A stretch of DNA of 64,000 bases. Source: Anthoceros angustus. Taxonomy: Eukaryota > Plantae > Anthocerotophyta. Positions 1-48,622 of the stretch are shown here, in pieces. Under the pieces are notes generated by a model. That model saw nothing but the letters and a program-made list of their open reading frames with translations, did no database searches and was not told the DNA's origin. Within the stretch, counting starts at the first letter, position 1. Every line of letters starts with the position of its first letter. The position numbers and the translations under genes were made by a program. Location of the stretch: contig VJWM01000063.1 of assembly GCA_010909165.1 (NCBI GenBank), positions 1,488,001 to 1,552,000 of the forward strand, written 5' to 3'.

Positions 1-480
1 CCCTCCAAGGAATCAGTCCGTTGCTGAAGTGCAGATATCCCTCTACGTGATCATATGGTGCGAAACTTGCTTTCAATTAAGTTTAGACAAGAATGAACCC
101 GTAACTTGAAGGAGAAGTTTTGAAAAAAAGATTTGTCTACAAGAAATCCAACGCTTATGTGTGTTAAAGTGTGTAAGCAAGTTGTACACAAGTTTCATCT
201 CAAACGAATGTACGATGTATTTATTTATTTTGGCCTACTATATTTTTTTTTGTTAGGATAAATAAAATAGATCAATCATAATTTATGATAGAAACTAGAA
301 ATACATCTACTGCTCAAGTATCGGTTTTGATGATGTATATGAAAAGGCTAGAGCTTTGTCACCAAATTACGTTGATTTAAAATCAAACAAATCGACATTA
401 CAACATTACTTTTTGTAAGCCCAAAACAGCCGATGCAAATTAGAAAAATAGCCCCTTTCTTCGTGATTACGGATAATCTG

Positions 481-2382
481 TTAATAACCAGGCCACCAAA
501 ACATCCAAGTACCTCCGCTAAACAATCACTACCTTCATTATCATAAAAGATTTTGTAGTCATATTGTTGAGGATCCGTTGTTGTTAAAGTATAGCCTTTT
601 GCATCACGTGGGATGAGATTATTATGCCCATCGGCCACTATAGTGTGCATTGCGCCCATGGGCTGGTACATCATTTACTCCACATGCTTTGCGGTCGTTC
701 GAACCAAATCGCCCATTCCCCATCACTACGTGTACTGTGGACTTCCCATTAGTGTTTCACCTCCCATTGCATTTCAGAAGCCCATCTCGCAAAAGACCTT
801 CAGATAGATATTATTTGGCCAATAACCTACAGCTATGCCCTCGATATACCACACATCTCTGTAGCATCTAGATTACAAATCAACCCAATTTGTAAATAGG
901 GTGAATGAACTTGCCACATTGGACAAATACATTAAAACTATTCAAAGCTCTTGAAATAAAGAAGAATAGAATGATATAGTTATATATCACGATACCTTGT
1001 TAATGCCAAGAGCATGCTTGTGCCATCATAATTCAGACAAAACCACCACCAAGGACATAGGTTGCATCGGTTTGAATAAATCAGCATTGTAGATTGAAGC
1101 ATCCCGTTGTTTGATAATTATCCTGTATTAACACACAACACTTTATATTAGCTACGAAGTTTGAACTAACATGCATTACTAGTGAAGGAATGTTGCTTTC
1201 CATAGGAATCACTTCGTCCAATAAATAAACAAATGAGGTTGTGCATCCGAAAACATTAATGGTTCCACCTATTTTTGAAGAAACAAGAAATTTCAAATGT
1301 TAGGTGCCTTCCACCAAAACGTTATTATATTTTCTTGGATTATAAAACTCTTTTGAGATTTGATTGATATGTTTATAATACTATAACATAAAGCAACATA
1401 ACAATCCACACTTGACGTATTACATTATTATTGCCTGATGCTATAACCCAAATTTGCGAGATTGTACCATCTTGGTTTGTCATATCGACGAGGATTCCAA
1501 AGACTAATCCGTTCCACCTCCATTCCACTTTCCCGGACTTGAAGCAACGACATCACGTTTATATCTACATATGTTAATGAATCTTGCATGCTTGTGTACG
1601 TGTTTAACAATAGCTTCATGCTTGCTACATTGATCTATCTAGTTCTCATTATCATGAGGACTTCATGGTTTGAGGTACTTACATGATGCGTGACCGATTG
1701 AACTTGGCCTAGAGCTCTTTTGCGGCCGTATTTACTTTGTGCACGTTATCTCCTTTGCTTGCACGTAGAATAGGTATAGTACCTTCGGACACGAACCAAC
1801 TTCATGTTGATAGAGTATAAATCGTGTTGCTTGATAACATAGTTGTGATTCGCCTTTTGAGTTGATGTTGATGGTTTCTACGTAGTACTGGAGCTATTTT
1901 AGATCTTGAGCATCAAATGAAGACAAAGTATGCTAATGTTATAGTTACATCCGTTTGAAATGAAAGCCATAACGAAAGCACACTTACTTGAATCACATGA
2001 TCCTTAAAGCGTGGATCTCGTAGTGTTAGTTGGTGCTCAATCTTCACGCAATCTACTATCGAACCATCTGTAGCTGGAATCAATTCAAACATAAAAATAG
2101 CGAGTCGCTTTTAAGATACTAATGCAAAGAATGGTCAAGCCTAAAAAAAAACCTTAGAACCTTTAGTTAATATGAATAAAAATTCCCAATCAACAAGAAT
2201 TGGGGAATCGTTAAAATCTCACAAATTAAAGGAAAGTAAAAAACTTGTGTGTTTGGACAAATGGCAATGTACCATCTTTTGAAATAAAAGCTTTCCTTTG
2301 TGCCTCAACCAACGCTTTTGCTTCCATAGCTAAAAAGGAACAAGAAGCTTGCCAATAGTAGGATTAGCCAAGTGTTAGACAT
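481..2382 (-). CDS. Neprosin-family (DUF239) secreted glutamic peptidase precursor, copy 1; 7 exons; apparent indels
   Basis: Reconstructed exons: ~2273-2382 MSNTWLILLLASFLFLFSYGSKALVEAQRKAFISKD (signal peptide); 1988-2067 DGSIVDCVKIEHQLTLRDPRFKDHVIQ; 1683-1877 ...HEVGSCPEGTIPILR...; ~1402-1554 YVVASSPGKWNGG..ISLWNP..SQIWVI..EVGWI; ~1214-1268 VEPLMFSDAQPHLFIYWT; 996-1122 DNYQTTGCFNLQCPGFIQT; 481-~860 GYWP..WGGE..MGNGRF..DPQQYDY..FGG(P)G. These match the Neprosin_AP (PF14365) and Neprosin (PF03080) motif order. Some frames need single-base corrections. Confidence 0.88.
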
Positions 2383-2489
2383 GGTGTCAACTAGTCTTCA
2401 CTAGGAAGTCTCACAAGAAAAGGAGCTTGAACATGAACTTAGCTAATTTAGAACAACTTTAACTCGACAATAATGTGAATAAGAGTGAA

Positions 2490-2583
2490 GCACACACACA
2501 CATATATAGACCATATCTAAAATTATTTCTTGAACTTATCTCTTGGTATACAATTGATCTTGATACATATATGTACATGCATG
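2490..2583 (-). promoter_or_regulatory. Putative core promoter of the neprosin gene (TATA-like CTATATAT, a (GT)n tract and an RY-like CATGCATG), repeated in every unit
   Basis: On the minus strand, CTATATAT at 2502-2509 lies ~120 bp upstream of the ATG and is followed by a GT repeat. CATGCATG is at 2576-2583. Assigned from motif and position only. Confidence 0.4.
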
Positions 2584-2819
2584 TATGCGCCAGATTCTTG
2601 AATTAGTTATGGATATGGAAAATGCCCATCAGAGAAGCTCAGCCTGATTTTTCTCTTAAGCTTCAGATGGGCGAGCTCTTGCGACTAGGTACATTTGCAA
2701 TTCAGCTAATATTGTGAAGCGCTTTTCCGCCAAGTTTGGTGATAAAACACTACCCAAAAGTTTTAGTGTTTGAAGTTTGCCAAGGCATCATGAGCTCATC
2801 ATATCCAAAGGTCCTTACC

Positions 2820-3142
2820 CAAGCCTCGCTACCATTTCTATAGACTATCGCATGTTGGGCTTCCCTATTTTGATCATTGGCACGATCCTTTGCGGACATC
2901 ATACCGCTAATAGCTACCAATATTTTACATTACATCATGGTGTTGCAATGTATGTACATTCTCATGCCATATGTGAGCTTCCAAGAAAATCTCATTACCC
3001 TTATGACCCTTTTTGAAGGTAAGCAATAGCTATGCTCTCCGGCCAATGTGGCGCATCACATTGATGTGTGTCCTTCAAATCTTAGTTCTCGATATTTAGC
3101 TTAGTTTCCACATTGAAGGTTTGTGTTATTTTGATAATACAG
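2820..3142 (+). repeat. Module A: diverged direct repeat with a donor-intron-acceptor signature (in every unit)
   Basis: Aligns by eye with 5603-5922: catgttgggcttc..tattttgatc, catcatggtgtt, atatgtgagct..caagaaaatct, aag|gtaag donor at 3019, tacag acceptor at ~3142. Confidence 0.7.
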
Positions 3143-3367
3143 ATTATCGGCATGCATATAGTGTGATGACGACAAAGGAAATTGGCAATGAGGTGATTTT
3201 GCAATTCCTACCCTCGACGACACTCAACACACTTGAATGCTGCGGTGGCTCAACTTCTCAATTGGAATGGAATGTCGATGATGGTGGTATGATGTATCAA
3301 TTTCCCATGTCCTCATTTTAAATGTCACAAACTTTCTAACGTTATTATGGATTTGGTCATAATGAGT

Positions 3368-5200
3368 CTTCATGTTGTAGAGGATTTGTTTGGGCATAAA
3401 CACAAATCTTTATGACGGTCTCACTGCTGGTTAGATGTAAGCCCTAAAGGAATAATCTACTCAAATTGAGTGGTTGTTGTAGCGTTTTGGGCCCTCATGT
3501 TTTCCACATCCATTTTTACGTCGGACCTTTGAGCATATGTGCCTCGCAATGTGGAGAACATGTAGATTTTTAGAGCGGACCAACACCATCTCCATGCCCG
3601 TGAGCTTGAAGGAGATTCCTGTAAGATGCGTGGAACAAAGCTGTACATGCTGAGGCCCACCATCACAATGGCCTCTTCTTGAGCCACGAGCTAGAGCCCT
3701 CGCTAGACCGTGGTCGTAAGGCCTCAACAACCTTGATGGCCACGGCAATATCCGGTCGTCACGGTGCGTGTTGCCGATTGTTTAGGTCGATCCGATGTGT
3801 TTTTAGAAATGGAGGTCACCTAAGCATAGCTTAGTAGGACTAGCCCAATTTTTCTTTGGAAAATGTGATGGCCATGCTCTTGACTTTCAATTGTGCTCAT
3901 TTTTGTGACAATGTCCATGGCCTTGCTAAGAATTCAATCCGTGATGAAGTTTGCTCAACCCAAGTCCTTGTCATTCTGCAAGCCTGTGAGGATGCTCGCC
4001 TGCCTTGTGACCTGAAGGGTCAAAGGGCATTGGAAATTTGTGGAAATGTCATATAAGGCATTGCCTTGTTTCAAAAGAGATGAGAGATACATACATGCGT
4101 GCACGGTGGTCATTGTGAGAGTGAGACCAGGTAAAGCAGTTTTTTTAAAAATAAAATATACATAAATACATGATATTCACCGACGTAAATGGACTTCGTC
4201 CTTTAGGAGTTGAATTCCATGGCAGCATGCCAAAGAGCATTTCAGTTCGTGAACATTCAAAGCCCGGGGGCCACAATCTTCCTAAGTACGTTGTCGGCGG
4301 AGAAATGGGATCACAAAGAATGCAACGACGATTGCGATTGTAGAAGCATAAGGAGCCAAAGCAAAGATTCGAGTTGCCGAGGCAAGATGCGGAGATTGCA
4401 AACATCGGCATCCGCGCCCACGGTCCCGAGCTCATCGGCCTTGCGACCGAGGCGGTAGGTGGAGAAATCATTCCACAAGGTGACATCGGAATAGAATCAC
4501 GCATGACAAGCATGGTCGTGAGTTTTGATCCAAGAAAATCTTGGCAAAGGCGTGTCATCGATCAAACGAAGGGTGACTTCGACCCGAGCAACCGTATGGT
4601 GCTGACTTGATGGAAAGGAGGTCTTGCTCGGGTTGGATCCACCAAACCGGATCGCCGCAGATTCAAGACGATGTTGTGAGAACCAGCATTGATAAAGCTC
4701 AAGAACTACCATCGGGTTTGGCCTCCAATCGGCGAACAACATTTGGTTGGATGTGGGATTGCTTGGGATCCGCAGGTGAATCGAAGGTGATTGTGAAGTC
4801 GGTGTCGCATAAGCGCACCGCCAGTTGGGGAACCCGATATATGGGCGTGACGCGCTGCCCTCGCCGATGTCGTTGTCATGTGCTAGAGAGACCGTGGAAC
4901 CCACAAGGGGTGTGCTGCCCACTTTGTTGTAAAGGCGCTGTAGGTGTTGTCACTAGTCGCCCTGGTGTTCAAGTCGATGCATTACCACTTCTATCCCATG
5001 TTGGAATGGCTAGCTTGCCAATGCCACGCAATGCAGGCCCACCCCTTGTAACTTCCGGCTGGATGAAGAAACGTAAGCACAAGGCAAAATTTCAAAGGTC
5101 TAAGTGCTATGCCCGTAAAACATCTCTCATCCCACGATGGTGAGACCATTATTGAAGCATTTGTTATGCTCTATGAGAAAATGATGCTCAGAACGTTCGA
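3368..5200. other. Unidentified GC-richer degenerate segment of the repeat unit, possibly a transposon or gene relic
   Basis: Broken plus-strand ORF pieces recur in all units (IESRMTSMVVSFDPRKSW, YGARLDGKEVLLGLDPPNR, MHYHFYPMLEWLACQC). No recognisable RT, integrase or transposase motif. Part of it has a homologue outside the array. Confidence 0.35.
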
Positions 5201-5602
5201 ATGAGGACATTTTAAGATTGATACATTATCGACCACGATCATCCAAATTCCATAAATTTTAATATAGAACATTCACCACTCGCAACATTCAAGTGCAACC
5301 TCGATTTTGCGGAAACATTTCAAGCACAAGCAATCTTGCCCATCCAGGTCCATAGGCGGATAGGATCCTTGTGTGATGCTCCTCACTTTTTCATAGAGAA
5401 GCAGTCTTGTGCACACGGCACAAAGGGCCACTTGCCCAACAAAATGTCCATACATTTGCAACATTATGAATCTAGCTTTCAGCTCTAGTATCAAGCTTTG
5501 TCATGCTTAATCCATTGTGTCGATTCTTACTAGAGGGGAGGAGAAGGTGCGGATTGTGCTTGTATGAACACATTATTGTCGTGGGGCGCAAGCATTTTAA
5601 TG

Positions 5603-5922
5603 CAAGCGCCACCACCATTAGGGTCTCTACATGTTGGGCTTCTCTATTTTGATCGTTGGCATGCTTCTTTCCGGATAGCATATCCGATAGCTACTAGTGT
5701 TACGCCGACATCATGGTGTTTCACGTCCGGTGTTACAAAATGATGCGATATGTGAGCTCACAAGAAAATCTTATGACTCATTTTCAAGGTAAGAGATAGT
5801 ACGCTCTTGGGCTGACTATGTCCCCACATATTATTACTTCGACGTGTTGTCCTTCGAGATCCTAATTCTTGTTATCTTCTTTATATCTAAGTTTTGTGTT
5901 ACTCGGTTGATTGTAATTACAG
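5603..5922 (+). repeat. Module B: diverged paralogue of module A (in every full unit)
   Basis: Same motif order as module A; donor caag|gtaag at 5789 and acceptor tacag at ~5922. Confidence 0.7.
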
Positions 5923-6769
5923 GATGCAAGCAAAACATTCAAGTTGAAGCTTTCCCTGTTTTAAGGTTTAGCTTTAATTTTCCGTTTCTTTCTTTTACTT
6001 AAGCATATATTTGCCATTTGGTGGCTTAACTCACGTTCATACTCAAAGGCTTCAGTGTTTGTTGCAATGCTAGTAAGCCTGTGACATTGTGAGCACCTGG
6101 TCGCACCTTGTAAGTCAAGCTTAATTTTGGTAATAAAAATAAATCGAACATTGGGGATTTTGCAAGGTTCTAATTCTTAAAAATATGTCTTCATCGGGCA
6201 TGAACCAAATTTCAGTCATGGTGTTTTTGGTGTTTTATTTAAAAGTTGACTCACAAAGTTTCTATAGACCGTTAATCGAAGTTAGAGGACAAAAGCCTCC
6301 AAGGAATCATCCCGTTCAAGTGCATAGATATCCCTCTACGTGATCATATGGTGCTAAACTTGCTTTCAATTAAGTTTGACAAGAATGAACCTGTAACTTG
6401 AAGGAGAAGTTTTGAAAAATAGATTTGTCTACAAGAAATCCAACGCTTATGTGTGTTAAAGTGTAAGCAAGTTGTACACAAGTTTCATCTCAAAGCGATA
6501 TACGGATGTATTTATTTATTTTGGCCTACTATATTTTTTGTTAGGATAAATAAAATAGATCAATCATAATTTATGATAGAAACTAGAAATACATCTACTC
6601 GTTCAAGTATCGGTTTTGATGATGTATATGAAAAGGCTATAGCTTTGTCACCAAATTACGTTGATTTAAAATCAAACAAATCGACATTACAACATTACTT
6701 TTTGTAAGCCCAAAGCAAATGGATGCAAATTAAGAAAAAATAGCCCCTTCTTGATTACGGATAATCTGG

Positions 6770-8650
6770 TTAATAACCAGGCCACCAAAACATCCAAGTA
6801 CCTCGCTAAACAATCACTACCTTCATTATCATAAAAGATTTTGTAGTCATATTGTTGAGGATCCGTTGTTAGAAGTATAGGCCTTTTGCATCACGTGGGA
6901 TGAGATTATTATGCCCATCGGCCACTATAGTGTGCATTGCAGCCATGTGGTACATCATTTACTCCACATGTTTGGTCCGTGGCGGTCAGAACCAAATCGC
7001 CCATTCCCTATCACTCGATGACCGTGGACTTCCCATTAGTGTTTCACCTCCCATTGCATTTGTTAGCAAGCCCATCTCGCAAAAGACCTTACGTAGATAT
7101 TATTTGGCCAATAACCTCTGGTATGCCCACGATATCTGACCACACATCTGCGTGGCACTAGCTATCACAAATCAACCCAATTTGTAAATAGGGTGAATGA
7201 ACTTGCCACATTGGACAAATACATTAAAACTATTCAAAGCTCTTGAAATAAAGAAGAATAGAATGATATAGTTATATATCACGATACCTTGTTAATGCAA
7301 GAGCATGCTTGTGCCATCATAATTACAAAAACCACCAAGGACATAGGTTGCATCGGTTTGAATAAATCCGAGGCATTGTAGATTGAAGCATCCTGTTGTT
7401 TGATAATTATCTTTCAGACACACACAACACTTTATATTAGCCTAAGTTTGAACTAACATGCATTACTAGTGAAGGAATGTTGCTTTCCATAGGAATCACT
7501 TCTTGTCAATAAATAAACAAATGAGGTTGTGCATCCGAAAACATTAATGGTTCCACCTATTTTTGAAGAAACAAGAAATTTCAAATGTTAGGTGCCTTCC
7601 CAAACGTTATTATATTTTCTTGGATTATAAAACTCTTTTGAGATTTGATTGATATGTTTATAATACTATAACATAAAGCAACATACTTACAATCCACCCC
7701 ACTTCATAGTATTACGGTTATTATTGCGATGCTATAACCCAAATTTAGATTGTACCATCTTGGTTTGTCATATCGCCTTGAGGATTCCAAAGACTAATAC
7801 GCTCCACCTCCATTCCACTTTCTCGGACTTGAAGCAACGACATACCGCATTTTATATCTACATATGTTAATGAATCTTGCATGCTTGCGTGTAACATAGC
7901 TTCATGCTTGCTACATTGATCTATCTAGTTCTCATTATCATGAGGACTTCATGGTTTAGGTACTTACATGATGCGTGACCGATTGAACTTGGCCTAGAGC
8001 TCTTTGCGGCTTCGTATTTACTTTGTGCACGTTATCTCCTTTGCACGTAGAATAGGTATAGTACCTTCCGGACACGAACCAACTTCATGTTGATAAGCAT
8101 CGCACGTGTTGCGGAATACAGTTGTGATTCGCCTTTTGAGTTGATGTTGATGGTTTCTACGTAGTACGTGGAGCTATTTTAGATCTTGAGCATCAAATGA
8201 AGACAAAGTATGCTAATGTTATAGTTACATCTTGAAATGAAAGCCATAGCAAAGCACTTACTTGAATCACATGATCCCAAAGCGTGGATCTCGAGTGTTA
8301 GTTGGTGCTCAATCTTCACGCAATCTACTATCGAACCATCCGTAAGTCGGAATCAATTCAAACATAAAAATAATAATTTAAGATACTAATGCAAAGAATG
8401 GTCAAGCCTAAAAAAAAAAACCTTAGAACCTTTAGTTAATATGAATAAAAATTCCAATCAACAAGAATTGGGGAATCGATTTAAAATCTCACAAATTAAA
8501 GGAAAGTAAAAACATACGCTGTGTGTTTGGACAAATGGCAATGTACCATCTTTTGAAATAAAAGCTTTGTGCCTCAACCAACGCTTTGCTTCCATAGCTA
8601 AAAAGGAACAAGAAGCTTGCCAATAGTAGGATTAGCCAAGTGTTAGACAT
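6770..8650 (-). CDS. Neprosin-family peptidase precursor, copy 2 (apparent indels)
   Basis: Same exon motifs as copy 1; ATG at 8650 and inferred stop at 6770. Confidence 0.85.
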
Positions 8651-11600
8651 GGTGTGCTCAACTAGTCTTCACTAGGAAGTCTCACAACAAAAGGAGCTTG
8701 AACATGAACTTGTAGCTAATTTAGAACAACTTTAACTCCGGACAATAATGTGAATAAGAGTGAAGCACACACACACACATATATAGACCATATCTAAAAT
8801 TATTTCTTGAACTTATCTCTTGGTATACAATTGATCTTGATACATATATGTACACATGCATGTGCCCAGATTCGAATTAGTTATGGATAGGAAAATGCCC
8901 ATGCGCGAGAAGCCCACTGATTTTTCTCTTAAGCTTGAATGGGCAGCTCTTGCGACTAGGCTTTGCAATTCAGCTAATATTGTGAAGCGCTTTTTAAACA
9001 CAAGTTTGGTGATAAAACACTACCCAAAAGTTTTAGTGTTTGAAGTTTGCCAAGGCATCATGAGCTCATCACATCCAAAGGTCCTTACCCAAGCCGCTAC
9101 CATTTCTATAGACTATCCGCATGTTGGGCTTCCCTATTTTGATCATTGGCACGATCCTTTGCGGACATCATACCGCTAATAGCTACCAATATTTTACATT
9201 ACATCATGGTGTTGCAGATGTACATTCTCATGCCATATGTGAGCTTCCAAGAAAATCTCATACCCTTATGACCCTTTTGAAGGTAAGCAATAGCTATGCT
9301 CTCCGACAATGTGCGATACATTGATGTGTGTCCTTCTCAAATCTTGGTTCAGTATTTAGCTTGGTTTCCACATTGAAGGTTTGTGTTATTTTGATAATAC
9401 AAGATTCTCGGCATGCATATAGTGTGATAGGCGACAAGGAAATTGGCAATGAGGTGATTTTGCAATTCCTACCTCTCGAGACTCAACACACCTTGAATCT
9501 GCACGGTGCCTCAAGCTCTCAATTGGAGTGGAATGTCGATGATGGTGGTATGATGTATCAATTTCCCATGTCCTCATTTTAAATGTCACAAACTTTCTAA
9601 CGTTATTATGGATTTGGTCATAATGAGTCTTCATGTTGTAGAGGATTTGTTTGGGCATAAACACAAATCTTTATGACTCACTGTTGGTTAGATGTAAGCC
9701 CTAAAGGACGAATCTACTCAAATTGAGTGGTTGTCGTAGTTTTGGGCCTGTGTTTTTCCACATCCATTTTTACGTCGGACCTTTGAGCATATGTGCCTGC
9801 AATGTGGAGAACATGTAGATTTTTAGAGCGGACAAACGAACACCATCTCCATGCCCAACGGTGAGCTTGAAGGGAGATTCACATGATGGAACAAAGCCGA
9901 GTGTATGCCGGGGCTGGTCACAATGGCCTCTTCTTGAGCCCCAGCTAGAGCCCTCTCGCTAGACCGTGGTCGATAAGGCCTCAACTGTGATGGCCTTGCA
10001 GGCAATATCCGGTCGTCGCAGGTGCGTGTTGCCGTTGTTTAGGTCTCGATCCCGATGTGTTTTTAGAAATGGAGGTCACCGCATAGCTTAGTAGGACTAG
10101 CCCAATTTTTCTTTGGAAAATGTGATGGCCATGCTCTTGACTTTCAATTGTGCTCATTTTTGTGACAATGTCCATGGCCTTGCTAAGAATTCAATCCGTG
10201 ATGAAGTTTGCTCAACCCAAGTCCTTGTCATTCTGCGCCACAAGTGAGGATGCTCGCTGCGGCCTTGTGACCTTGAAGGGTCAAAGGCATTGGAAATTTG
10301 TGGAAATGTCATATAAGGCATTGCCTTGTTTCAAAAGAGATGAGCGATACATGCAAGCTCTGGTCATTGTGAGAGTGAGACCAGTAAACGATTTTTTAAA
10401 AATAAAATATACATAAATACATGATATTCACCACAGAATGCCGAAAATGGACTTCGTCCTTAGGAGTTGAATTCAAGCCTGCATGCCAAAGAGCATTTCC
10501 AGATTCGTGAACATTCAAAGCGCGCACAATCTTCCTAAATACGTTGTCGACGGAGAAATGGGATCAAAGAATGCAACGGCGATTGCGATTGTAGAAGCAT
10601 AAGGAGCCAAAGCAAAGATTGAGTTGCCGAGGCAACGAAGATGCGAGATTGCAAACATCGGCATCCGGCGCCCGGTCCTCGAGCTCATCATGCGACCGGT
10701 AGGTGGGAGAAATCTCTCCACAAGGTGACATCGGAATAGAATCACGCATGACAAGCATGGTGGTGAGTTTTGATCCAAGAAAATCTTGGCGATGCGTGTG
10801 CAATCAAATCGAAGGGTGACACCGGGCACCGCGTATGGTGCTAGACTTGATGGAAAGGAGGTCTTGCTCGGGTTGGATCCACCAAACCGGATCGCCATGA
10901 TTCAGCGATGTTGTGAGAACCAGCATTGATAAAGCTCAAGAACTACCATCGGTTTGGCCTCCAATCGGTGAACAACATTTGGTTGGATGTGGGATTGCTT
11001 GGGATCCGCAGGTGAATCAAGGTGATTGTGAAGTCGGTGTCGTACAAGCGCACCGCCCGACAAGTTGGGGCAGCCCAACTTCCGGATATGGGCGTAGCAT
11101 GATGCGCGGCGCGCCCTCGCGCGATGTCGTTGTCATGTGCTAGAGACCGTGGAACCCACAAGGGCTGCTGCCCACTTTGTTGTAAAGACGTCTGAGGTGT
11201 TGTCAAGCGACTAGTCGCCGACTCGTGGGGTATGTTCAAGTCGATGCATTACCACTTCTATCCCATGTTGGAATGGCTAGCTTGCCAATGCCACGCAATG
11301 CAGGCCCACCACCCCTTGTAACTTCCAGCCGGATGAAGAAAGCGAAAGCACAAGGCAAAATTTCAAAGGTCTAAGTGCTATGCCCGTAAAACATCTCTCC
11401 CACGATGGTGAGACCATTATTGAAGCATTTGTTATGCTCTACAAGAGAAAATGATGCTAACGCTCGGAATGAGGACATTTTAAGATTGATACATTATCGG
11501 ACCACGATCATCCAAATTCCATAAATTTTAATATAGAACATTCGACCCACTCGCAACATTCAAGTGCAACCTCGATTTTGCGAAACATTTCAAGCACAAG

Positions 11601-13049
11601 CAATCTTGCCCATCCAGGTCCATAGGCGGGCGCATAGGATCCTTGTGTGATGCTCCTCACTTTTTCATAGAGGTCTTGTGCACACGGCACAAAGGGCCAC
11701 TTGCCCAACAAAATGTCCATACATTTGCAACATTATGAATCTAGCTTTCAGCTCTAGTATCAAGCTTTGTCATGCTTAATCCATTGTGTCTGATTCTTAC
11801 TAGAGGGAGGAGAAGGTGCGGATTGTGCTTGTATGAACACATTATTGCTGTGGGGCAAGCATTTTAATGCAAGCAAGCACGCCACCATTCCAGGGTCTCT
11901 ACATGTTGGGCTTCTCTATTTTGATCGTTGGCATGCTTCTTTCCGGATAGCATACCCGGCAGTAGCTACTAGTGTTACATCGACATCATGGTGTTTCACG
12001 GTCGATGTTACAAAATGATGCGATATGTGAGCTCACAAGAAAATCTTATGACTCATTTTCAAGGTAAGAGATAGTCGCTCTTGGTGACTATGTCCCCATA
12101 TTATTAGACGTGTTGTCCTTCGAGATCCTAGATCGTTATCTTCTTTATATCTAAGTTTTGTGTTACTCGGTTGATTGTAACTACAGGATGCAAGCAAAAA
12201 AACATTCTGTTGAAGCTTTCATGGTTTTAAGGTTTAGCTTTAATTTTCCGTTTCTTTCTTTTACTTCCAAGCATATGTTACTGCGAGGCCATTTGGTGGC
12301 TTAACTCACGCTCATACTCAAAGGCTTGGTGTTTGTTGCAAATGCTAGTAAGCTGCAGACATTTGAGCACCGGCGGTATGTCGCACCTTGTGTAATGCGG
12401 CTTAATTTTGGTAATAAAAATAAATCGAACATTGGGGATTTTGAAGGTTCTAATTCCCTTAAAAATATGTCTTCATCGCATGAACCAGCTCAAATCATGG
12501 TGTTTTTGGTGTTTTATTTAAAAGTTGACTCACAAAGTTTCTATAGACCGGTTAATCGGGTTAGAGGACAAAAGCCCTCCAAGGAATCGATCCGTTCAAG
12601 TGCGCAAGATATCCCTCTTGATCATCATGGTGCGAAACTTGCTTTCAATTAAGTTTAGACAAGAATGAACCAGGTAACTTGAAGGAGAAGTTTTGAAAAA
12701 TAGATTTGTCTACAAGAAATCCAACGTTTATGTGTTAAAGTGTAAGCAAGTTGTACACAAGTTTCATCTCAAACAGAATGTCGGATGTATTTATTTTTTG
12801 GCCTACTATATTTTTTGTTAGGATAAATAAAATAGATCAATCATAATTTATGATAGAAACTAGAATACATCTACCGTTCAAGTATCGGTTTTGATGATGT
12901 ATATGAAAAGGCTAGAGCTTTGTCACCAAATTACGTTGATTTAAAATCAAACAAATCGACATTACAACATTACTTTTTGTAAGCCCAAAACAAAGTCGGA
13001 TGCAAATTAAGAAAAATAGTACTCTTCAGGATTACGGATAATCTGGTTA

Positions 13050-36600: not shown

Positions 36601-38000
36601 GATCCTTGTGTGATGCTCCTCACTTTTTCATAGAGAAAGCAGCACACGGCACAAAGGGCCACTTGCCCAACAAAATGTCCATACATTTGCAACATTATGA
36701 ATCTAGCTTTCAGCTCTAGTATCAAGCTTTGTCATGCTTAATCCATTGTGTCCGATTCTTACTAGAGGGAGGAGAAGGTGCGGATTGTGCTTGTATGAAC
36801 ACATTATTGTCGTGGACCAAGCATTTTAATGCAAGCCCGCCACCATTCTAGGGTCTCTACATGTTGGGCTTCTCTATTTTGATCGTTGGCATGCTTCTTT
36901 CCGGATAGCATATCCGATAGCTACTAGTGTTACATCGACATCATGGTGTTTCACGTCCGGTGTTACAAAATGATGCGATATGTGAGCTCACAAGAAAATC
37001 TTATGACTCATTTTCAAGGTAAGAGATAGTCGCTCTTGGCGACTATGTCCCCACATATTATTACGACGTGTTGTCCTTCGAGATCCTAGTTCTATCTTCT
37101 TTATATCTAAGTTTTGTGTTACTCGGTTGATTGTAACTTAGGTGATGCAAGCAAAACATTCAAGTTGAAGCTTTCCGCTTTTAAGGTTTAGCTTTAATTT
37201 TCCGCTTTCTTTTACCTAAGCATATGTTGCAGGTGCCATTTGGTGGCTTAACTCACGCTCATACTCAAAGGCTTGGTGTTTTGGTGTTTGTTGCAAATGC
37301 TAGTAAGTCAGACATGTGGAGCAATCTAGGTACGTCGCACCTTGTAAGTCGGCGGCTTAATTTTGGTAATAAAAATAAATCGAACATTGGGGATTTTGCA
37401 AGGTTCTAATTCCTTAAAAATATGTCTTCATCGGGCATGAACCAAAACATATGGTGTTTTGGTGTTTTATTTAAAAGTTGACTCACAAAGTTTCTATAGC
37501 TATGACCGGGTTAGAGGACAAAAGCCCTCCAAGGAATCATCCGTTCAAGTGCAAGATATCCCTCTACGTGATCATATGGTGCGAAACTTGCTTTCAATTA
37601 AGTTTAGACAAGAATGAACCTGTAACTTGAAGGAGAAGTTTTGAAAAATAGATTTTGTCTACAAGAAAATCCAACGTTTATGTGTGTTAAAGTGTAAGCA
37701 AGTTGTACACAAGTTTCATCTCAAACGAATGGATGTATTTATTTATTTTGGCCTACTATATTTTTTGTTAGGATAAATAAAAATAGATCAATCATAATTT
37801 ATGATAGAAACTAGAAATACATCTACTGCTCAAGTATCGGTTTTTGATGATGTATATGAAAAGGCTATAGCTTTGTCACCAAATTACGTTGATTTAAAAT
37901 CAAACAAATCGACATTACAACATTACTTTTTGTAAGCCCAAACAGTGGATGCAAATTAAGAAAAAATAGCCCCTTTCTTCGTGGATTACGGATAATCTGG

Positions 38001-39927
38001 TTAATAACCAGGCCACCAAAAACATCCAAGTACCTCCGCTAAACAATCACTACCTTCATTATCATAAAAGATTTTGTAGTCATATTGTTGAGGATCCGTT
38101 CAGAAGTATAGGCCTTTTGCATCACGTGGGATGAGATTATTATGCCCATCGGCCACTATAGTGTGCATTGCAGCCATGTGGGCTGGTACATCATTTACTC
38201 CACATGTTCTGGTCCCGCGGTCAGAACCAAATCGCCCATTCCCCATCACTACGCAGGACCGTGGACTTCCCATTAGTGTTTCACCTCCCATTGCATTTGA
38301 GCAAGCCCATCTCGCAAAAGACCTTCAGATAGATATTATTTGGCCAATAACCTACTATGCCCTCGATATATACCCACACATCTGCGTGGCACTAGCTATC
38401 ACAAATCAACCCAATTTGTAAATAGGGTGAATGAACTTGCCACATTGGACAAATACATTAAAAACTATTCAAAGCTCTTGAAATAAAGAAGAATAGAATG
38501 ATATAGTTATATATCACGATACCTTGTTAATGCCAAGAGCATGCTTGTGCCATCATAATTACCACAAAACCACCACCAAGGACATAGGTTGCATCGGTTT
38601 GAATAAATCCGAGGCATTGTAGATTGAAGCATCCTGTTGTTTGATAATTATCAATCGTATTAACACACAACACTTTATATTAGCTACGAAGTTTTGAACT
38701 AACATGCATTACTAGTGAAGGAATGTTGCTTTCCATAGGAATCACTTCATCCAATAAAATAAACAAATGAGGTTGTGCATCCGAAAACATTAATGGTTCC
38801 ACCTATTTTTTGAAGAAACAAGAAATTTCAAATGTTAGGTGCCTTCCACCAAAACGTTATTATATTTTCTTGGATTATAAAACTCTTTTGAGATTTGATT
38901 GATATGTTTATAATACTATAACATAAAGCAACATACTTACAATCCACCCCACTCAGCCAGTTACGGTTATTATTGCAGATGCTATAACCCAAATTTGCGA
39001 GATTGTACCATCTTGGTTTGTCATATCGACGAGGATTCCAAAGACTAATACGCTTCCACCTCCATTCCACTTTCTCGGACTTGAAGCAACGACATACCGC
39101 ATTTTATATCTACATATGTTAATGAATCTTGCATGCTTGTGTAATGATTTAACAATAGCTTCATGCTTGCTACATTGATCTATCTAGTTCTCATTATCAT
39201 GAGGACTTCATGGTTTGAGGTACTTACATGATGCGTGACCGATTGAACTTGGCCTAGAGCTCTTTTTGCGGCTCAGATTTACTTTGTGCACGTTATCTCC
39301 TTTGCTTGCACGTAGAATAGGTATAGTACCTTCCGGACACGAACCAACTTCATGTTGATAGCCGATCGGCCTCGTGTTGCGAATAGTTGTGATTCGCCTT
39401 TTGAGTTGATGTTGATGGTTTCAGAGTACGTGGAGCTATTTTAGATCTTGAGCATCAAATGAAGACAAAGTATGCTAATGTTATAGTTACATCCGTTTGA
39501 AATGAAAGCCATAACGAAAGCACACTTACTTGAATCACATGATCCCAAAGCGTGGATCTCGTGGTGTTAGTTGGTGCTCAATCTTCACGCAATCTACTAT
39601 CGAACCATCCGTAAGTCGGAATCAATTCAAACATAAAAATAGCGAGTCGGTTTAAGATACTAATGCAAAGAATGGTCAAGCCTAAAAAAAAACCTTAGAA
39701 CCTTTAGTTAATATGAATAAAAATTCCCAATCAACAAGAATTGGGGAATCGATTTAAAATCTCACAAATTAAAGGAAAGTAAAAACATACGTTGTGTGTT
39801 TGGACAAATGGCAATGTACCATCTTTTGAAATAAAAGCTTTCCTTTGTGCCTCAACCAACGCTTTGCTTCCATAGCTAAAAGGAACAAGAAGCTTGCCAA
39901 TAGTAGGATTAGCCAAGTGTTAGACAT
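38001..39927 (-). CDS. Neprosin-family peptidase precursor, copy 7 (apparent indels)
   Basis: ORF fragments GGETLMGSP..VVMGNGRF and ISLWNP; same exon layout as copy 1. Confidence 0.85.
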
Positions 39928-42900
39928 GGTGTGAACTAGTCTTCACTAGGAAGTCTCACAAAGGAGCTTGAACATGAACTTGTAGCTAATTTAGAACAAC
40001 TTTAACTCCGGACAATAATGTGAATAAGAGTGAAGCACACACACACACATATATAGACCATATCTAAAATTATTTCTTGAACTTATCTCTTGGTATACAA
40101 TTGATCTTGATACATATATGTACACATGCATGTAGTTGATTCTTTGAATTAGTTATGGATACAGGAAAATGCGTAGAGCTCAGCCCGATTTTTCTCTTAA
40201 GCTTGAATGTAGCTCTTGCGACTAGGCTGTTTGCAATTCAGCTAATATTGTGAAGCGCTTTTAAAACACAAGTTTGGTGATAAAACACTACCCAAAAGTT
40301 TTAGTGTTTGAAGTTTGCCAAGGCATCATGAGCTCATCATATCCAAAGGTCCTTACCCAAGCCTGCTACCATTTCTATAGACTATCCGCATGTTGGGCTT
40401 CCCTATTTTGATCATTGGCACGATCCTTTGCGGACATCATACCGCTAATAGCTACCAATATTTTACATTACATCATGGTAATGATGTACATTCTCATGCC
40501 ATATGTGAGCTTCCAAGAAAATCTCATACCCTTATGACCCTTTTGAAGGTAAGCAATAGCTATGCTCTCCGGCCGACAATGTGGCGCAAATGTGATGTGT
40601 GTCCTTGAAATCTTGGTTCTGTATTTAAGCTTAGTTTCCACATTGAAGGTTTGTGTTATTTTGATAATACAAGATTATCTGGCATGCATATAGTGTGATA
40701 GGCGACAAAGGAAATTGGCAATGAGGTGATTTTTGCAATTCCTACCTCGGACTCGACACTCAACACACTTGAATGCCGCACTGGCTCAATCGTTCTCAAT
40801 TGGAGTGGAATGTCGATGATGGTGGTATGATGTATCAATTTCCCATGTCCTCATTTTAAATGTCACAAACTTTCTAACGTTATTATGGATTTGGTCATAA
40901 TGAGTCTTCATGTTGTAGAGGATTTGTTTGGGCATAAACACAAATCTTTATGATCTCACGTGGTTAGATGTAAGCCTAAAGGACGAATCTACTCAAATTG
41001 AGTGGTTGTCATGCGTTTTGGGCCCTGTGTTTTTCCACATCCATTTTTACGTCGGACCTTTGAGCATATGTGCCTGCAATGTGGAGAACATGTAGATTTT
41101 AGAGCGGACAAAGCGAACACCATCTCCATGCCCAGCGGTGAGCTTGAAGGGAGATTCTGTAAGATGCACGTGGAACAAAGCCGGGTACATGCTGAGGGCC
41201 CCATCACAATGGCCTCTTCTTGAGCGTCTAGCTAGAGCCCTCGCTAGACCGTGGTCGATAAGGCCTCAACATGGCCTTGCAGGCAATATCCGGTCGCCAA
41301 AGGTGCGTGTTGCCGATTGTTTAGGTCGATCCGATGTGTTTTTAGAAATGGAGGTCAAGCAGATAGCTTAGTAGGACTAGCCCAATTTTTCTTTGGAAAA
41401 TGTGATGGCCATGCTCTTGACTTTCAATTGTGCTCATTTTTGTGACAATGTCCATGGCCTTGCTAAGAATTCGAATCCGTGATGAAGTTTGCTCAACCCA
41501 AGTCCTTGTCATTCTGCCACAAGTGAGGATGTCGGGCCTTGTGACCTGAAGGGTCAAAGGGCATTGGAAATTTGTGGAAATGTCATATAAGGCATTGCCT
41601 TGTTTCAAAAGAGATGAGCGTATACATGCAATCTGCACGTGGTCATTGTGAGAGTGAGACCGGTAAACAGATTTTTTAAAAATAAAATATACATAAATAC
41701 ATGATATTCACAGATGCGGAAAATGGACTTCGTCCTTAGGAGTTGAATTCGCAAGCCGCATGCCAAAGAGCATTTCCAGTTCGTGAACATTCAAAGCCCG
41801 GCCGCACAATCTTCCTAAGTACGTTGTCTGAAACGGGATCACAAAGAATGCAACGATTTTATTGCGATTGTAGAAGCATAAGGAGCCAAAGCAAAGATTC
41901 GAGTTGCCGAGGCAACGAAGATGCGAGATTGCAAACATCGGCATCACCACCGGTCCTCGAGCTCATCGGCCTTGCGACCGGTAGGTGGAGAACATCGCCC
42001 ACAAGGTGACATCGGAATAGAATCACGCATGACAAGCATGGTCGTGAGTTTTGATCCAAGAAAATCTTGGCGATGCGTCGATCAAAGCGAAGGGTGACTT
42101 GACCCGTGCACCCAATGGGTATGGTGCTAGACTTGATGGTGGAGGTCTTGCTCGGGTTGGATCCACCAAACCGGATCGCAGATTCAGCGATGTTGTGAGA
42201 ACCAGCATTGATAAAGCTCAAGAACTACCATCGTTTGGCCTCCAACCCGAACAACATTTGGTTGGATGTGGGATTGCTTGGGATCCGCAGGTGAATCGAA
42301 GGTGATTGTGAAGTCGGTGTCGTACAAGCGCCGCAAGTTAGGGGTAGCCCAACTCCTGATATGGCGTAGCATGATGCGCGCCCTCGCTGCCGATGTCGTT
42401 GTCATGCTGCTAGAGAGACCGTGGAACCCACAAGGACTACCGCTGCCCACTTTGTTGTAAAGACGCGTCGTAGGTGTTGTCAAACGACTAGTCGCTCGTG
42501 GTCGTGTTCAAGTCGATGCATTACCACTTCTATCCCATGTTGGAATGGCTAGCTTGCCAATGCCACGCAATGAGGCCCACCAGCCCTTGTAACTTCCAGC
42601 CGGATGAAGAAACGAAAGCACAAGGCAAAATTTCAAAGGTCTAAGTGCTATGCCCGTAAAACATCTCTCATCCCACGATGGTGAGACCATTATTGAAGCA
42701 TTTGTTATGCTCTACAAGAGAAAATGATGCTCGAACGCCTGAATGAGGACATTTTAAGATTGATACATTATCGACCACGATCATCCAAATTCCATAAATT
42801 TTAATATAGAACATTCGACCCACTCGCAACATTCAAGTGCAACCTTCGATTTTATGGAAACATTCAAGCACAAGCAATCTTGCCCATCCAGGTCCATAGG

Positions 42901-44313
42901 CGGGCGCATAGGATCCTTGTGTGATGCTCCTCACTTTTTCATAGAGAAAGCAGTCTTGTGCACACGGCACAAAGGGCCACTTGCCCAACAAAATGTCCAT
43001 ACATTTGCAACATTATGAATCTAGCTTTCAGCTCTAGTATCAAGCTTTGTCATGCTTAATCCATTGTGTCGATTCTTACTAGAGGGAGGAGAAGGTGCGG
43101 ATTGTGCTTGTATGAACACATTATTGTGGACCAAGCATTTTAATGCAAGCAAGCCCGCCACCATTCTGTAGGGTCTCTACATGTTGGGCTTCTCTATTTT
43201 GATCGTTGGCATGCTTCTTTCCGGATAGCATACCCGATAGCTACTAGTGTTACATCGACATCATGGTGTTTCACGGTCGATGTTACAAAATGATGCGATA
43301 TGTGAGCTCACAAGAAAATCTTATGACTCATTTTCAAGGTAAGAGATAGTCTGCTCTTGGTGACTATGTCCCCACATATTGTTACACCGAGTGTTGTCCT
43401 TCGAGATCCTAGTTCTTATCTTCTTTATATCTAAGTTTTGTGTTACTCGGTTGATTGTAACTACAGGATGCAAGCAAAACATTCAAGTTGAAGCTTTCCT
43501 TTTAAGGTTTAGCTTTAATTTTCCGCTTTCTTTTACTTCCAAGCATATGTTGCGTGCCATTTGGTGGCTTAACTCACGCTCATACTCAAAGGCTGTGTTT
43601 GTTGCAAATGCTAGTAAGCCTGCAGACATTGTGAGCAACGGTATGTCGCACCTTGTAAGCTGCTTAATTTTGGTAATAAAAATAAATCGAACATTGGGGA
43701 TTTTGCAAGGTTCTAATTCCCTTAAAAATATGTCTTCATCGCATGAACCAGCCACATGGTGTTTTGGTGTTTTATTTAAAAGTTGACTCACAAAGTTTCT
43801 ATAGACCGTTAATCGGGTTAGAGGACAAAAGCCCTCCAAGGAATCATCCATATTGAAGTGCGCAAGATATCCCTCTACGTGATCATATGGTGCGAAACTT
43901 GCTTTCAATTAAGTTTAGACAAGAATGAACCTGTAACTTGAAGGAGAAGTTTTGAAAAAATAGATTTGTCTACAAGAAAATCCAACGCTTATGTGTGTTA
44001 AAGTGTAAGCAAGTTGTACACAAGTTTCATCTCAAACGAATGCATGGATGTATTTATTTATTTGGCCTACTATATTTTTTGTTAGGATAAATAAAATAGA
44101 TCAATCATAATTTATGATAGAAACTAGAAATACATCTACTGCTCAAGTATCGGTTTTGATGATGTATATGAAAAGGCTAGAGCTTTGTCACCAAATTACG
44201 TTGATTTAAAATCAAACAAATCGACATTACAACATTACTTTTTGTAAGCCCAAAAACAAATCGGATGCAAATTAAGAAAAATAGCCCCTTCTTCGTGATT
44301 ACGGATAATCTGG

Positions 44314-46219
44314 TTAATAACCGTGGCCACCAAAAACATCCAAGTACCTCCGCTAAACAATCACTACCTTCATTATCATAAAAGATTTTGTAGTCATATT
44401 GTTGAGGATCCGTTGTTAAGAAGTATAGGCCTTTGCATCACGTGGGATGAGATTATTATGCCCATCGGCCACTATAGTGTGCATTGCGCCATGTGGGCTG
44501 GTACATCATTTACTCCACATTGCTGTCCTGGCCGAACCAAATCGCCCATTCCCCATCACTACGTGACTGTGGACTTCCATTAGTGTTTCACCTCCCCATT
44601 GCATTTCAAGAGCAAGCCCATCTCGCAAAAGACCTTCAGATAGATATTATTTGGCCAATAACCGCCTATGCCTCGATATACGACCACACATCCGCAGCAC
44701 TAGCTCACAAATCAACCCAATTTGTAAATAGGGTGAATGAACTTGCCACATTGGACAAATACATTAAAAACTATTCAAAGCTCTTGAAATAAAGAAGAAT
44801 AGAATGATATAGTTATATATCACGATACCTTGTTAATGCCAAGAGCATGCTTGTGCCATCATAATTACCGACAAAACCACCACCAAGGACATAGGTTGCA
44901 TCGGTTTTGAATAAATCCAGGCATTGTAGATTGAAGCATCCTGTTGTTTGATAATTATCCGACCGTATTAACACACAACACTTTATATTAGCTAAGTTTT
45001 GAACTAACATGCATTACTAGTGAAGGAATGTTGCTTTCCATAGGAATCACTTATCATTCAATAAAATAAACAAATGAGGTTGTGCATCCGAAAACATTAA
45101 TGGTTCCACCTATTTTTGAAGAAACAAGAAATTTCAAATGTTAGGTGCCTTCCACCAAAACGTTATTATATTTTCTTGGATTATAAAACTCTTTTGAGAT
45201 TTGATTGATATGTTTATAATACTATAACATAAAGCAACATACTTACAATCCACCCCACTTCAGACATGTTATTATTGCTCATGCTAACCCAAATTTGCAG
45301 ATTGTACCATCTTGGTTTGTCATATCGCCTTGAGGATTCCAAAGACTAATACGTTCCACCTCCATTCCACTTTCCGGACTTGAAGCAACGACATACCGCA
45401 TTTTATATCTACATATGTTAATGAATCTTGCATGCTTGTGTACGTATTTAACAATAGCTTCATGCTTGCTACATTGATCTATCTAGTTCTCATTATCATG
45501 AGGACTTCATGGTTTGAGGTACTTACATGATGCGTGACCGATTGAACTTGGCCTAGAGCTCTTTGGCTTCAGATTTACTTTGTGCACGTTATCTCCTTTG
45601 CTTGCACGTAGAATAGGTATAGTACCTTGGACACGAACCAACTTCATGTTGATAGACGGCTCGCGGTTGCAAGAATAGTTGTGATTCGCCTTTTGAGTTG
45701 ATGTTGATGGTTTCTCGTGAGTACGTGGAGCTAGTTTAGATCTTGAGCATCAAATGAAGACAAAGTATGCTAATGTTATAGTTACATCCGCTTGAAATGA
45801 AAGCCATAACGAAAGCACACTTACTTGAATCACATGATCCTTAAAGCGTGGATCTCGTAGTGTTAGTTGGTGCTCAATCTTCACGCAATCTACTATCGAA
45901 CCATCCGTGTCGGAATCAATTCAAACATAAAAATAGGAATACTTTAAGATACTAATGCAAAGAATGGTCAAGCCTAAAAAAAAAACCTTAGAACCTTTAG
46001 TTAATATGAATAAAAATTCCCAATCAACAAGAATTGGGGAATCGATTTAAAATCTCACAAATTAAAGGAAAGTAAAAACATACGTTGTGTGTTTGGACAA
46101 ATGGCAATGTACCATCTTTTGAAATAAAAGCTTCCTTTGTGCCTCAACCAACGCTTTGCTTCCATAGCTAAAAGGAACAAGAAGCTTGCCAATAGTAGGA
46201 TTAGCCAAGTGTTAGACAT
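44314..46219 (-). CDS. Neprosin-family peptidase precursor, copy 8 (last copy; apparent indels)
   Basis: ORF fragment RSDNYQTTGCFNLQC. This copy reads cacctccccattgcat, which gives the in-frame MQWGGE containing the second catalytic Glu. Confidence 0.85.
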
Positions 46220-48466
46220 GGTGCTCAACTAGTCTTCACTAGGAAGTCTCATGAAAAGGAGCTTGAACATGAACTTGTAGCTAATTTAGAACAACTTTAA
46301 CTGGACAATAATGTGAATAAGAGTGAAGCACACACACACATATATAGACCATATCTAAAATTATTTCTTGAACTTATCTCTTGGTATACAATTGATCTTG
46401 ATACATATATGTACACATGCATGTATGCGCCCAGACGCGAATTAGTTATGGATACAGGAAAATGCCCATGCGCAGAGAAGCCGGCCTAATTTTTCTTAAG
46501 CTCGAATGGGGCGCAGCTCATGACTGTCGCTTGCACCAGACATATTGTGAAGCGCTTTTACAAGTTTGGTGATAAAACACTACCCAAAAGTTTTAGTGTT
46601 TGAAGTTTGCCAAGGCATCATGAGCTCTGTCATATCCAAAGGTCCTTACCCAAGCCTGCTACTATTTCTATAGACTATCTGCATGTTGGGCTTCCCTATT
46701 TTGATCATTGGCACGATCCTTTGCGGATATCATACCTACTAATAGCTACCAATATTTTACATTACATCATGTTGTTACAACAGATGTACATCCTCATGCC
46801 ATATGTGAGCTTCCAAGAAAATCTCGTTACCCTTATGACTCTTTTTGAAGGTAAGCAATAGCTATGCTCTCCGGCCGACAATGTGGCGCAATCACATGTT
46901 GATGTGTGTCCTTGAAATCTTGGTTAATATTTAAGCTTAGTTTCCACATTGAAGGTTTGTGTTATTTTGATAATACAGTATCTACGGCATGCATATAGTG
47001 TGATAGACGACAAAGGAAATTGGCAATGAGGTGATTTTTGCAATTCCTACCCTCAGACTCGACACTCAACACACTCAACACGGCTCAACTGTTCTCAATT
47101 GGAGTGGAATGTCGATGATGGTGGTATGATGTATCAATTTCCCATGTCCCATGTCCTCATTTTAAACGTCACAAACTTTCTAACGTTATTATGGATTTGG
47201 TCATAATGAGTGTCTAGCATACCCATCTTGTCAAGGAGGAGGTTGTTATACTTTTTATGAGGTGGAGCACCAGCTAGTGTGGCGCGGCTAGTGGGAGGCC
47301 CAACGGGCGAATCGGGCTTGATGGTCCTCCACATCTGTACTTGGAAGCTGATGACCAAGCTAATCGATTGGTGGATCGGGCGGAGCTTCGTCTAACTAGG
47401 TTTAGCGGCCGATCAATCTCCGCAACAATTAGATAATCACCATCATCATCGCTTGGCGTATTGCTTGCAGGTTGCCTATCAGGCCGATCGCTCGCGGCTT
47501 GCCCATCAAGCCGACCAAGTTTGCTAGAGCACTAGCTACCCTGGTTTGCGTGCTGGAGCTCCAGCTTGGTGAATCGGGCCAACAACAGGTGATCCACCTC
47601 ACCATGAGAAAAATAAAACGCATAACTTCCTTCGTGACGATATCATGAGGTGGAGGTGACTAAAGAATTCTGTTCTTTAGTCAACTTAGTCAATATTGCG
47701 TTACAATTCCAAGCAAGAAATTCGCAAGAATTATTAACGCAAAAAAGTTTGCTTTTCAAATCTTCATTCTCCCACCACTGGGACTCAAGTTTGCTTTTCA
47801 AATCGTCAACTTCACGAACGACTAAACGAAATTCTTGAAATGATAAACCTAAATAAATCCGCGGAGTCACTACGGCTATACAAACACACCACGAAAATGG
47901 AAAGGTAGATGTGGTCACCGGGTGAAGGAAGACCCCGCGGACGAAGGTCTTTCACCCCGCGGCGAAATCGGAGCCCATCAACAACAGAACCATGAAGGCT
48001 TCCTCCTCCTCTCAAACCCATCAACACCATAGGAGGAAGATCGAGCAATCAAGAAAGAATGATCCTACTAAATGTTGTCGATTGCCTGTCTTATTATCCC
48101 TTTTTCATCTTGAAGATCCTAAAGAACCGCAGCAGGTTGCAAGGCGCGACTGCCCCCAAGGATGCTCACAATGTCACAAATACCTCAAACCCTTGAAACT
48201 TGAACGTGATAAGCCACCAAAGGGCCAGCTCACGCTTAGAAGGAACAGAAAGGAGCGGTGAAACTGAAGATTGAAGCTAAAACATGGAAACCTTCAACTG
48301 GAATCTTTTTGCTTGGATCCTGTAGTTGCAGAGCTTTAATGCTGCAAAATCTAGGTAGGAATTTGCTGGTGGTTTCGTCATAAACTACTAGTGAAGGAAA
48401 TCGGATCGCAACCAAGAAGGGTGTCTTGCGGAGATAACAATTGCAAATACAACCACCCCGGGGATA

Positions 48467-48622
48467 ATTACCACTTCTATCCCATGTTGGAATGGCTAGC
48501 TTGCCAATGCCACGCGCTGATACCCGAGGCCCACCAGCCCCTCGTAACTTCCCAGGCTCGATGAAGGAACGTAGCAAGCACAAGGCAAACTTTCAAAGGT
48601 CTAAGTGCTCTGCCCGGAAAAC
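48467..48622 (+). repeat. Dispersed homologue of repeat-unit positions 4981-5121, outside the array
   Basis: attaccacttctatcccatgttggaatggctagcttgccaatgccacgc ... gcacaaggcaaa.tttcaaaggtctaagtgct.tgcccg is shared, in the same orientation, with each full unit. Confidence 0.9.

Follow-up and report, generated by a model that had tools for sequence, protein, structure and literature searches.

Genes of the neprosin/DUF239 family are known in tandem from Arabidopsis thaliana, where 50 DUF239 genes are present. The eight genes of cluster IV (including At4g23350, At4g23380 and At4g23390) follow one another in strict tandem over 20 kb of chromosome 4; all point the same way, each comprises 7 exons and 6 introns, all are predicted to be secreted, and the cluster arose by recent duplication (PMC12806958). 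A member of the family with a solved structure is neprosin from Nepenthes, whose catalytic dyad is formed by E188 and E297 (PMC9343461). Fragments of DUF239 genes also recur in the siren small interfering RNA (siRNA) loci of the Brassicaceae (bioRxiv 10.1101/2021.06.10.447945). Here we analyse a tandem array of neprosin-like genes in the hornwort Anthoceros angustus, which occupies most of a 64,000-nt stretch of contig VJWM01000063.1 (the window; all coordinates are window positions unless a unit position is indicated). None of the gene copies is intact as assembled, and the differences between the copies are concentrated at cytosines in the CG and CHG contexts. The explanation that we favour, with moderate confidence, is that most of these differences and most of the frame breaks are long-read base-calling or polishing errors at methylated CG and CHG cytosines in a real, young and probably methylated array. 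An earlier reading of this stretch, made from the letters alone (the sequence-only reading), knew of no description of such an array; one has been described, in Arabidopsis. Within the collection of papers searched, none pairs neprosin with hornworts.

Organization of the array and of the gene

The first 7 kb of the window were compared with the whole window by BLAST, which revealed a head-to-tail array at positions 1–47211 consisting of seven full units of 6188–6307 bp and one partial unit of 3380 bp (U1 to U8, Table 1). Each unit carries one gene, always on the minus strand, so that eight gene copies are present in the array, and the G+C content oscillates with the same period as the units. 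The extent of the array, its 6.3-kb unit and the presence of at least eight copies are exactly those given by the sequence-only reading, and both BLAST and MAFFT support the tandem amplification it had proposed. A single gene in constant orientation within a unit of constant length is the arrangement of a tandem gene cluster or macrosatellite, and the array of at least eight gene-bearing copies is real. Since U1 begins at the first base of the window, the array probably extends upstream beyond it. The copies had also been described as very similar. This is only partly right: in the MAFFT alignment the eight units are 93.2–96.9% identical at aligned bases, with 330–480 gap columns per pair of full units, and identity including gaps is 90.5–92.5% by BLAST.

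Within each unit, the gene runs on the minus strand from an ATG at unit position ~2382 down to ~484. It was searched exon by exon, as separate open reading frame (ORF) pieces. The only families recognised among 128 minus-strand ORF pieces (at least 36 amino acids, eight gene regions) were Neprosin_AP (7 pieces) and Neprosin (5 pieces). Exon 2 matched positions 2–34 of the Neprosin_AP profile (PF14365) at 1.5e-6 and exon 3 matched positions 43–86 at 7.4e-6. These matches identify the activation peptide (pro-domain), the single exons scoring below the 39.2-bit cut-off for the whole protein, as expected for fragments. Exon 5 of U3 matched positions 29–55 of the Neprosin profile (PF03080) at 5.9e-4, and exon 6 of U4 matched positions 41–76 at 2.1e-9, its score of 37.5 bits exceeding the cut-off of 22. 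Coverage of the catalytic-domain profile was thus limited to positions 29–86 of 214; the first 28 positions and everything past position 86 (exon 7) were unmatched in Pfam, the PDB and a library of 1.84 billion proteins. Exon 6 also matched the solved neprosin chains 7zvb, 7zu8 and 9qr8 at 1.4e-4, and exon 3 was weakly aligned to the pro-domain of 7zu8 around the C-P-x-G-x-I-P-I-R motif. All these matches are collinear with the domain order of the family.

The ATG is followed by ~13 hydrophobic residues and then by a small-residue motif, in a signal-like stretch that is nearly identical in the eight copies except for a 1-nt deletion in a T-run of U7 and U8. The profile and structure matches support the assignment of the gene to the neprosin/DUF239 family (MEROPS G3), in agreement with the sequence-only reading. 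That reading had further described a complete 7-exon secreted-protease gene; the units can plausibly be read as having seven exons, but the copies are not complete as assembled. The layout would be the usual one of the family, with a hydrophobic signal-like N-terminus, a Neprosin_AP pro-domain and a Neprosin catalytic domain, and an intact copy would be predicted to make a glutamic endopeptidase that is secreted as a zymogen and becomes active once the pro-domain is lost.

A candidate catalytic dyad was assigned by motif reading, the profile and structure alignments lying outside these residues. The putative equivalent of E188 lies in an E-V-G-W-I motif directly before a GTAAGT donor, with V-E-P-L in the next exon. 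The codon of this glutamic acid is GAA in U2, U3, U5, U6 and U8 and CAA in U1, and it is disrupted in U4 and U7. The motif read as that of the second glutamic acid, G-G-E, is kept in all eight copies. Hence, judged by its motifs, the gene seems to keep a Glu/Glu dyad. By the same kind of reading (H-E-A-I), the position equivalent to Y136 seems to be occupied by alanine.

A further difference between copies was seen in exon 5 (unit positions ~1205–1225; for example, 13760–13790 in U3 and 32452–32480 in U6), which reads the conserved F-I-Y-W-T in U1–U4 and a common variant, F-I-L-L, in U5–U8. This variant is probably a real difference, because it is common to neighbouring copies, and is one of the few with that property.

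Reading frames and the C-terminal exon

None of the copies as assembled has an uninterrupted coding sequence. Exon lengths vary among the copies (215–226 nt in exon 3, 211–224 nt in exon 4 and 373–388 nt in exon 7) by differences that are not multiples of three, and in none of the eight is any frame free of stops through exon 4 or through exon 7. When compared with the consensus, each copy showed 21–35 indel events within the 1.9 kb of the gene; single-nucleotide events prevailed, and lengths divisible by three were not favoured. The description of the copies as whole genes was therefore not borne out. Simple majority voting was also rejected as a route to an open gene, the consensus of the eight copies remaining frame-broken.

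At the frame-breaking sites inspected, a family-like reading usually survives in some copy: U4 and U7 preserve C-P-E-G-T, and U5 retains the second half of exon 3 and reads E-V-G-W-I in frame. Because of these surviving readings, the ancestral unit probably carried an intact gene. The frame breaks may be an artefact of the assembly.

Exon 7, the last exon, comprises about 40% of the catalytic domain and has no detectable relative. A word search with the 126-amino-acid exon 7 piece of U6 gave no match, and neither did a comparison of exon 7 with Pfam. Among 1.84 billion representative proteins, a profile built from exon 7 of four copies found no true match; its sole hit, P0001, an unrelated repeat protein of 1863 amino acids in which a short motif was matched 13 times, was discarded as spurious. 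Comparison of the exon 7 profile and of single pieces with the PDB yielded only chance matches for exons 4 and 7, and a feature search of the ESM Atlas with exon 7 gave no usable match.

Distribution of the differences between copies

Plant heterochromatin is methylated symmetrically in two contexts, CG and CHG, and in plants the methylation of both over repeats marks silencing. Every consensus cytosine on both strands was classed by context, and variation was counted among the seven full units. Variation was observed at 59% of the consensus positions in CG and 61% of those in CHG, in comparison with 19% in CHH and 17% at A/T. This bias is alike in all parts of the unit, whether gene, G+C-rich spacer or remainder, and variability falls off with the distance from a CG or CHG. 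The control dinucleotides GC, CC and GG, which have the same composition, are far less variable. The differences are concentrated in short scrambled hot-spots, and 62% of the indels of the gene region fall no more than 3 nt from a CG or CHG, where 24% would be expected. Clean substitutions away from these contexts amount to ~1.4% per pair.

Among the changes at CG and CHG, deletions outnumbered both transversions and transitions: per cell of the alignment, deletions accounted for ~8%, transversions for 5–6% and transitions for 4–5%. Deamination of 5-methylcytosine was ruled out as the source of the variability because transitions do not dominate the spectrum. Variants common to several copies showed almost no tree structure, with the exception of a weak pairing of U5 with U8 and of U2 with U4. 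In the unique flank of the same window, ORFs of ~950 codons are unbroken, which indicates that the noise is confined to the array. The observed/expected ratio of CpG is 0.76–0.81 in the array, compared with 0.50 in the gene-rich flank (47212–64000). Had the array been methylated over a long time, the reverse would be expected; the ratios agree with a young array.

Spacer, array edge and neighbouring genes

Each unit contains, in addition to the ~1.9-kb gene, a spacer of ~4.3 kb with no recognisable gene. A second gene was sought in 240 ORF pieces from both strands of the spacer in several copies, with no Pfam family recognised and a single chance match at 0.0052; scanning of the spacer for Rfam families and tRNAs gave none. 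The possibility that the unit is a two-gene cassette was rejected on these grounds. The only internal repeat of the unit is a direct repeat of ~210 bp (Table 1). A transposon-mediated origin found no support either: the boundary of the array does not fall at this repeat, and neither a reverse transcriptase nor an integrase domain was recognised. A scan for bacterial-type promoters was uninformative for a plant gene.

Table 1. Coordinates of the repeat units, gene copies and other features of the array (window positions)
Feature	Position	Strand	Size	Remarks
Repeat unit U1	1..6295		6295 bp	BLAST self-comparison and MAFFT
Repeat unit U2	6296..12574		6279 bp	BLAST self-comparison and MAFFT
Repeat unit U3	12575..18792		6218 bp	BLAST self-comparison and MAFFT
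Repeat unit U4	18793..24980		6188 bp	BLAST self-comparison and MAFFT
Repeat unit U5	24981..31241		6261 bp	BLAST self-comparison and MAFFT; start approximate by BLAST
Repeat unit U6	31242..37524		6283 bp	BLAST self-comparison and MAFFT
Repeat unit U7	37525..43831		6307 bp	BLAST self-comparison and MAFFT
Partial unit U8	43832..47211		3380 bp	BLAST; gene retained; cut at unit position 3380; array end
Neprosin-like gene copy 1	484..2382	-		ATG to putative stop, ends within ~3 nt; frame-broken; first catalytic Glu codon CAA; Neprosin_AP 3e-6 on 1916-2110
Neprosin-like gene copy 2	6772..8650	-		Frame-broken
Neprosin-like gene copy 3	13035..14934	-		Frame-broken; 3' end approximate; exon 5 (13730-13831) matches Neprosin profile positions 29-55
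Neprosin-like gene copy 4	19260..21153	-		Frame-broken; exon 6 piece 19767-19997, Neprosin 2.1e-9 (37.5 bits, cut-off 22); exon 3 piece 20500-20682, Neprosin_AP 7.4e-6
Neprosin-like gene copy 5	25465..27357	-		Frame-broken; no other copy has the first-Glu motif and the Q-I-W motif before it in one frame
Neprosin-like gene copy 6	31717..33627	-		Frame-broken; exon 6 matches solved neprosin 7zvb/7zu8 at 1.4e-4
Neprosin-like gene copy 7	38003..39927	-		Frame-broken
Neprosin-like gene copy 8	44316..46219	-		Frame-broken
G+C-rich spacer part	34640..36540			U6 example; unit positions ~3400-5300; no protein family, RNA family or tRNA recognised
Internal direct repeat, first copy	34069..34277	+	~210 bp	U6 example; 73% identical to second copy
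Internal direct repeat, second copy	36832..37029	+	~210 bp	U6 example
Degenerate unit fragments past array end	48176..48627			48176-48330 inverted, 74%; 48467-48627 direct, 86%

Old fragments of the unit, 74–86% identical to it, lie in the 2.5 kb that separate the array from the first neighbouring gene (47212–49700), together with ORFs with no Pfam family. Because of these old fragments, the edge of the array is taken to predate the present copies. Approximately 2.5 kb past the array end, a RAM2-like glycerol-3-phosphate acyltransferase gene was found on the plus strand (49734–51807; HAD_RAM2_N 2.7e-40, Acyltransferase 8.6e-8). It is followed on the minus strand by a multi-exon gene of the PP2A scaffold (A subunit) type with HEAT repeats (53853–56610), the exons of which are unbroken, and by a giant PLS-type pentatricopeptide repeat (PPR) gene (57364–63313), whose repeats were seen as a 312-bp tandem repeat with 14 copies and 72% matches. 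The PPR gene reads as two ORFs of ~950 codons, the downstream one ending in an E motif without a DYW domain. They are separated by one damaged repeat at ~60220–60460, with two in-frame stops and two frame changes, and the locus is either a pseudogene, two genes or the site of a local assembly error. Taken by themselves, these neighbouring genes identify the sequence as nuclear DNA of a land plant and no more closely than that.

Discussion

One important question is whether the broken frames of the eight copies belong to the plant genome or to its assembly. In our preferred explanation, 5-methylcytosine in CG and CHG contexts would have been misread during base-calling or polishing, and the errors would have persisted in the array because short reads would be unable to correct a repeat. 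There is a precedent for this, since nanopore consensus errors are concentrated at 5-methylcytosine motifs when the base-caller has not been trained on them (PMC6591954). If such errors explain the differences, the true copies would be much more alike than 91–94%, and therefore the amplification would be young or the array homogenised. The CG/CHG signature would then probably report methylation of the array: the whole unit, including the gene body, would be CG- and CHG-methylated in the tissue that was sequenced, as in a silenced repeat. The sequence-only reading had offered a repeat-silenced locus as one of its options, and this finds indirect support in the location of the inter-copy differences on cytosines of the two symmetric contexts, although silencing itself is only inferred.

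Several observations weigh against this explanation. Not only does the majority consensus of the eight copies stay frame-broken, but no copy is clearly open at two of the exon 7 junctions or in the stop region, and the lack of relatives of exon 7 could mean that decay preceded the amplification. The weak sharing of variants between U5 and U8 and between U2 and U4 shows that some differences are real. The CpG ratio of the array is by itself no sign of methylation. A deviation of 3–4% per copy is high for a polished consensus. In addition, the nanopore errors documented at 5-methylcytosine motifs are mostly consensus substitutions, not deletions (PMC6591954).

The main rival is a truly dead pseudogene array, in which the amplified gene lost its function and the copies have since diverged by ~6–9% with frameshifts. 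It would account directly for the absence of an open exon 4 or exon 7 from all eight copies, for the 21–35 indels per copy with no preference for multiples of three, for a majority consensus that is not open, and for a C-terminal exon without detectable relatives, no protein or transcript-derived relative having been found in word and profile searches. Against it, the spectrum is unlike that of neutral decay, with transitions about as frequent as transversions and deletions more frequent than substitutions. Moreover, the excess is limited to CG and CHG cytosines, those in CHH behaving like A/T; CpG is not depleted (observed/expected ~0.8), and the copies show almost no tree-like structure. We therefore regard decay as a possible explanation, though an unlikely one. 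A different alternative is that the array is largely an artefact of assembly, produced by the expansion of a few copies or by the filling of a gap with uncorrected single-read sequence; neither the copy number nor the sequences would then be reliable. Independent read errors on identical units would indeed be expected to give differences that are rich in deletions, star-like and of similar size in every pair (93–95.6% identity at aligned bases), and the unique flank is clean; in part, this alternative overlaps with the methylation-linked error that we favour. An artefact on that scale is improbable, however, given that the units keep regular lengths and boundaries throughout the 47 kb, that the array has a defined end junction with old unit fragments beyond it, and that some variants are common to particular copies.

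Another option of the sequence-only reading was selection on the dosage of a secreted protease; the array would then be an active, dosage-amplified cluster, in which intact genes for secreted glutamic peptidases are expressed in one tissue or another. The domains are in the right order after a signal-like N-terminus, the codon of the first glutamic acid is present in U2, U3, U5, U6 and U8, G-G-E is present in all eight copies, and some copy usually keeps the frame at the break sites inspected; the tandem DUF239 clusters of Arabidopsis, moreover, are expressed (PMC12806958). All the copies are nevertheless broken as assembled, and if the CG/CHG pattern represents methylation across the promoter and the gene body, silencing is the likelier state. 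We consider an active cluster improbable. Selection on the dosage of a secreted protease is unsupported, with no copy translatable as assembled and no transcript or protein relative found in the word and profile searches.

If methylation-linked error is indeed the source of most differences, inter-copy differences that trace the symmetric methylation contexts would allow repeats that are methylated and badly polished to be recognised in long-read assemblies without a reference. They also call for caution, as the 'pseudogenes' of such arrays may be assembly artefacts.

Comparison with known systems

Among gene-bearing macrosatellites, human D4Z4/DUX4 has a kilobase-scale unit with a single gene; its head-to-tail repeats are methylated and, as a rule, silent. 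The hornwort array differs from it in that gene and kingdom are unrelated, and its methylation is only inferred. A likeness to the array is also seen in the siren loci of the Brassicaceae, which consist of non-functional DUF239-derived sequence tied to DNA methylation, but they are single fragments from seed plants, defined by their output of 24-nt siRNAs in ovules, whereas the hornwort gene copies are full length. One might speculate that the neprosin-like genes of this plant were amplified several times into long CG/CHG-methylated macrosatellites, which would not serve as protease genes but, being silenced and perhaps a source of small RNAs, would regulate the DUF239 family in trans. We consider this very unlikely; if true, such arrays would be the bryophyte counterpart of the siren loci and would point to an old link between DUF239 and RNA-directed methylation.

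The likeness to the neprosin of Nepenthes x ventrata (7ZU8, 7ZVA and 7ZVB; dyad E188/E297) lies in the succession of pro-domain and catalytic domain and in what, by motif reading, seem to be the motifs around both glutamic acids. In contrast to that protein, the C-terminal 40% of the hornwort catalytic domain is without significant sequence similarity and the Y136 position seems to be alanine. The closest parallel in organization is cluster IV of Arabidopsis, with which the array shares eight neprosin-like genes in strict tandem, the same orientation and, on a plausible reading, the 7-exon layout. The unit is ~2.5 kb in Arabidopsis and 6.3 kb, with its 4.3-kb spacer, in the hornwort; the Arabidopsis genes are annotated and mostly expressed in seeds, whereas the hornwort copies are all broken as assembled; and cluster IV lacks the Glu/Glu dyad (X/Q pairs), which the hornwort gene, by its motifs, seems to have. 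Since tandem expansion of DUF239 genes is already known from Arabidopsis, the array adds a probable bryophyte example of it rather than a new principle.

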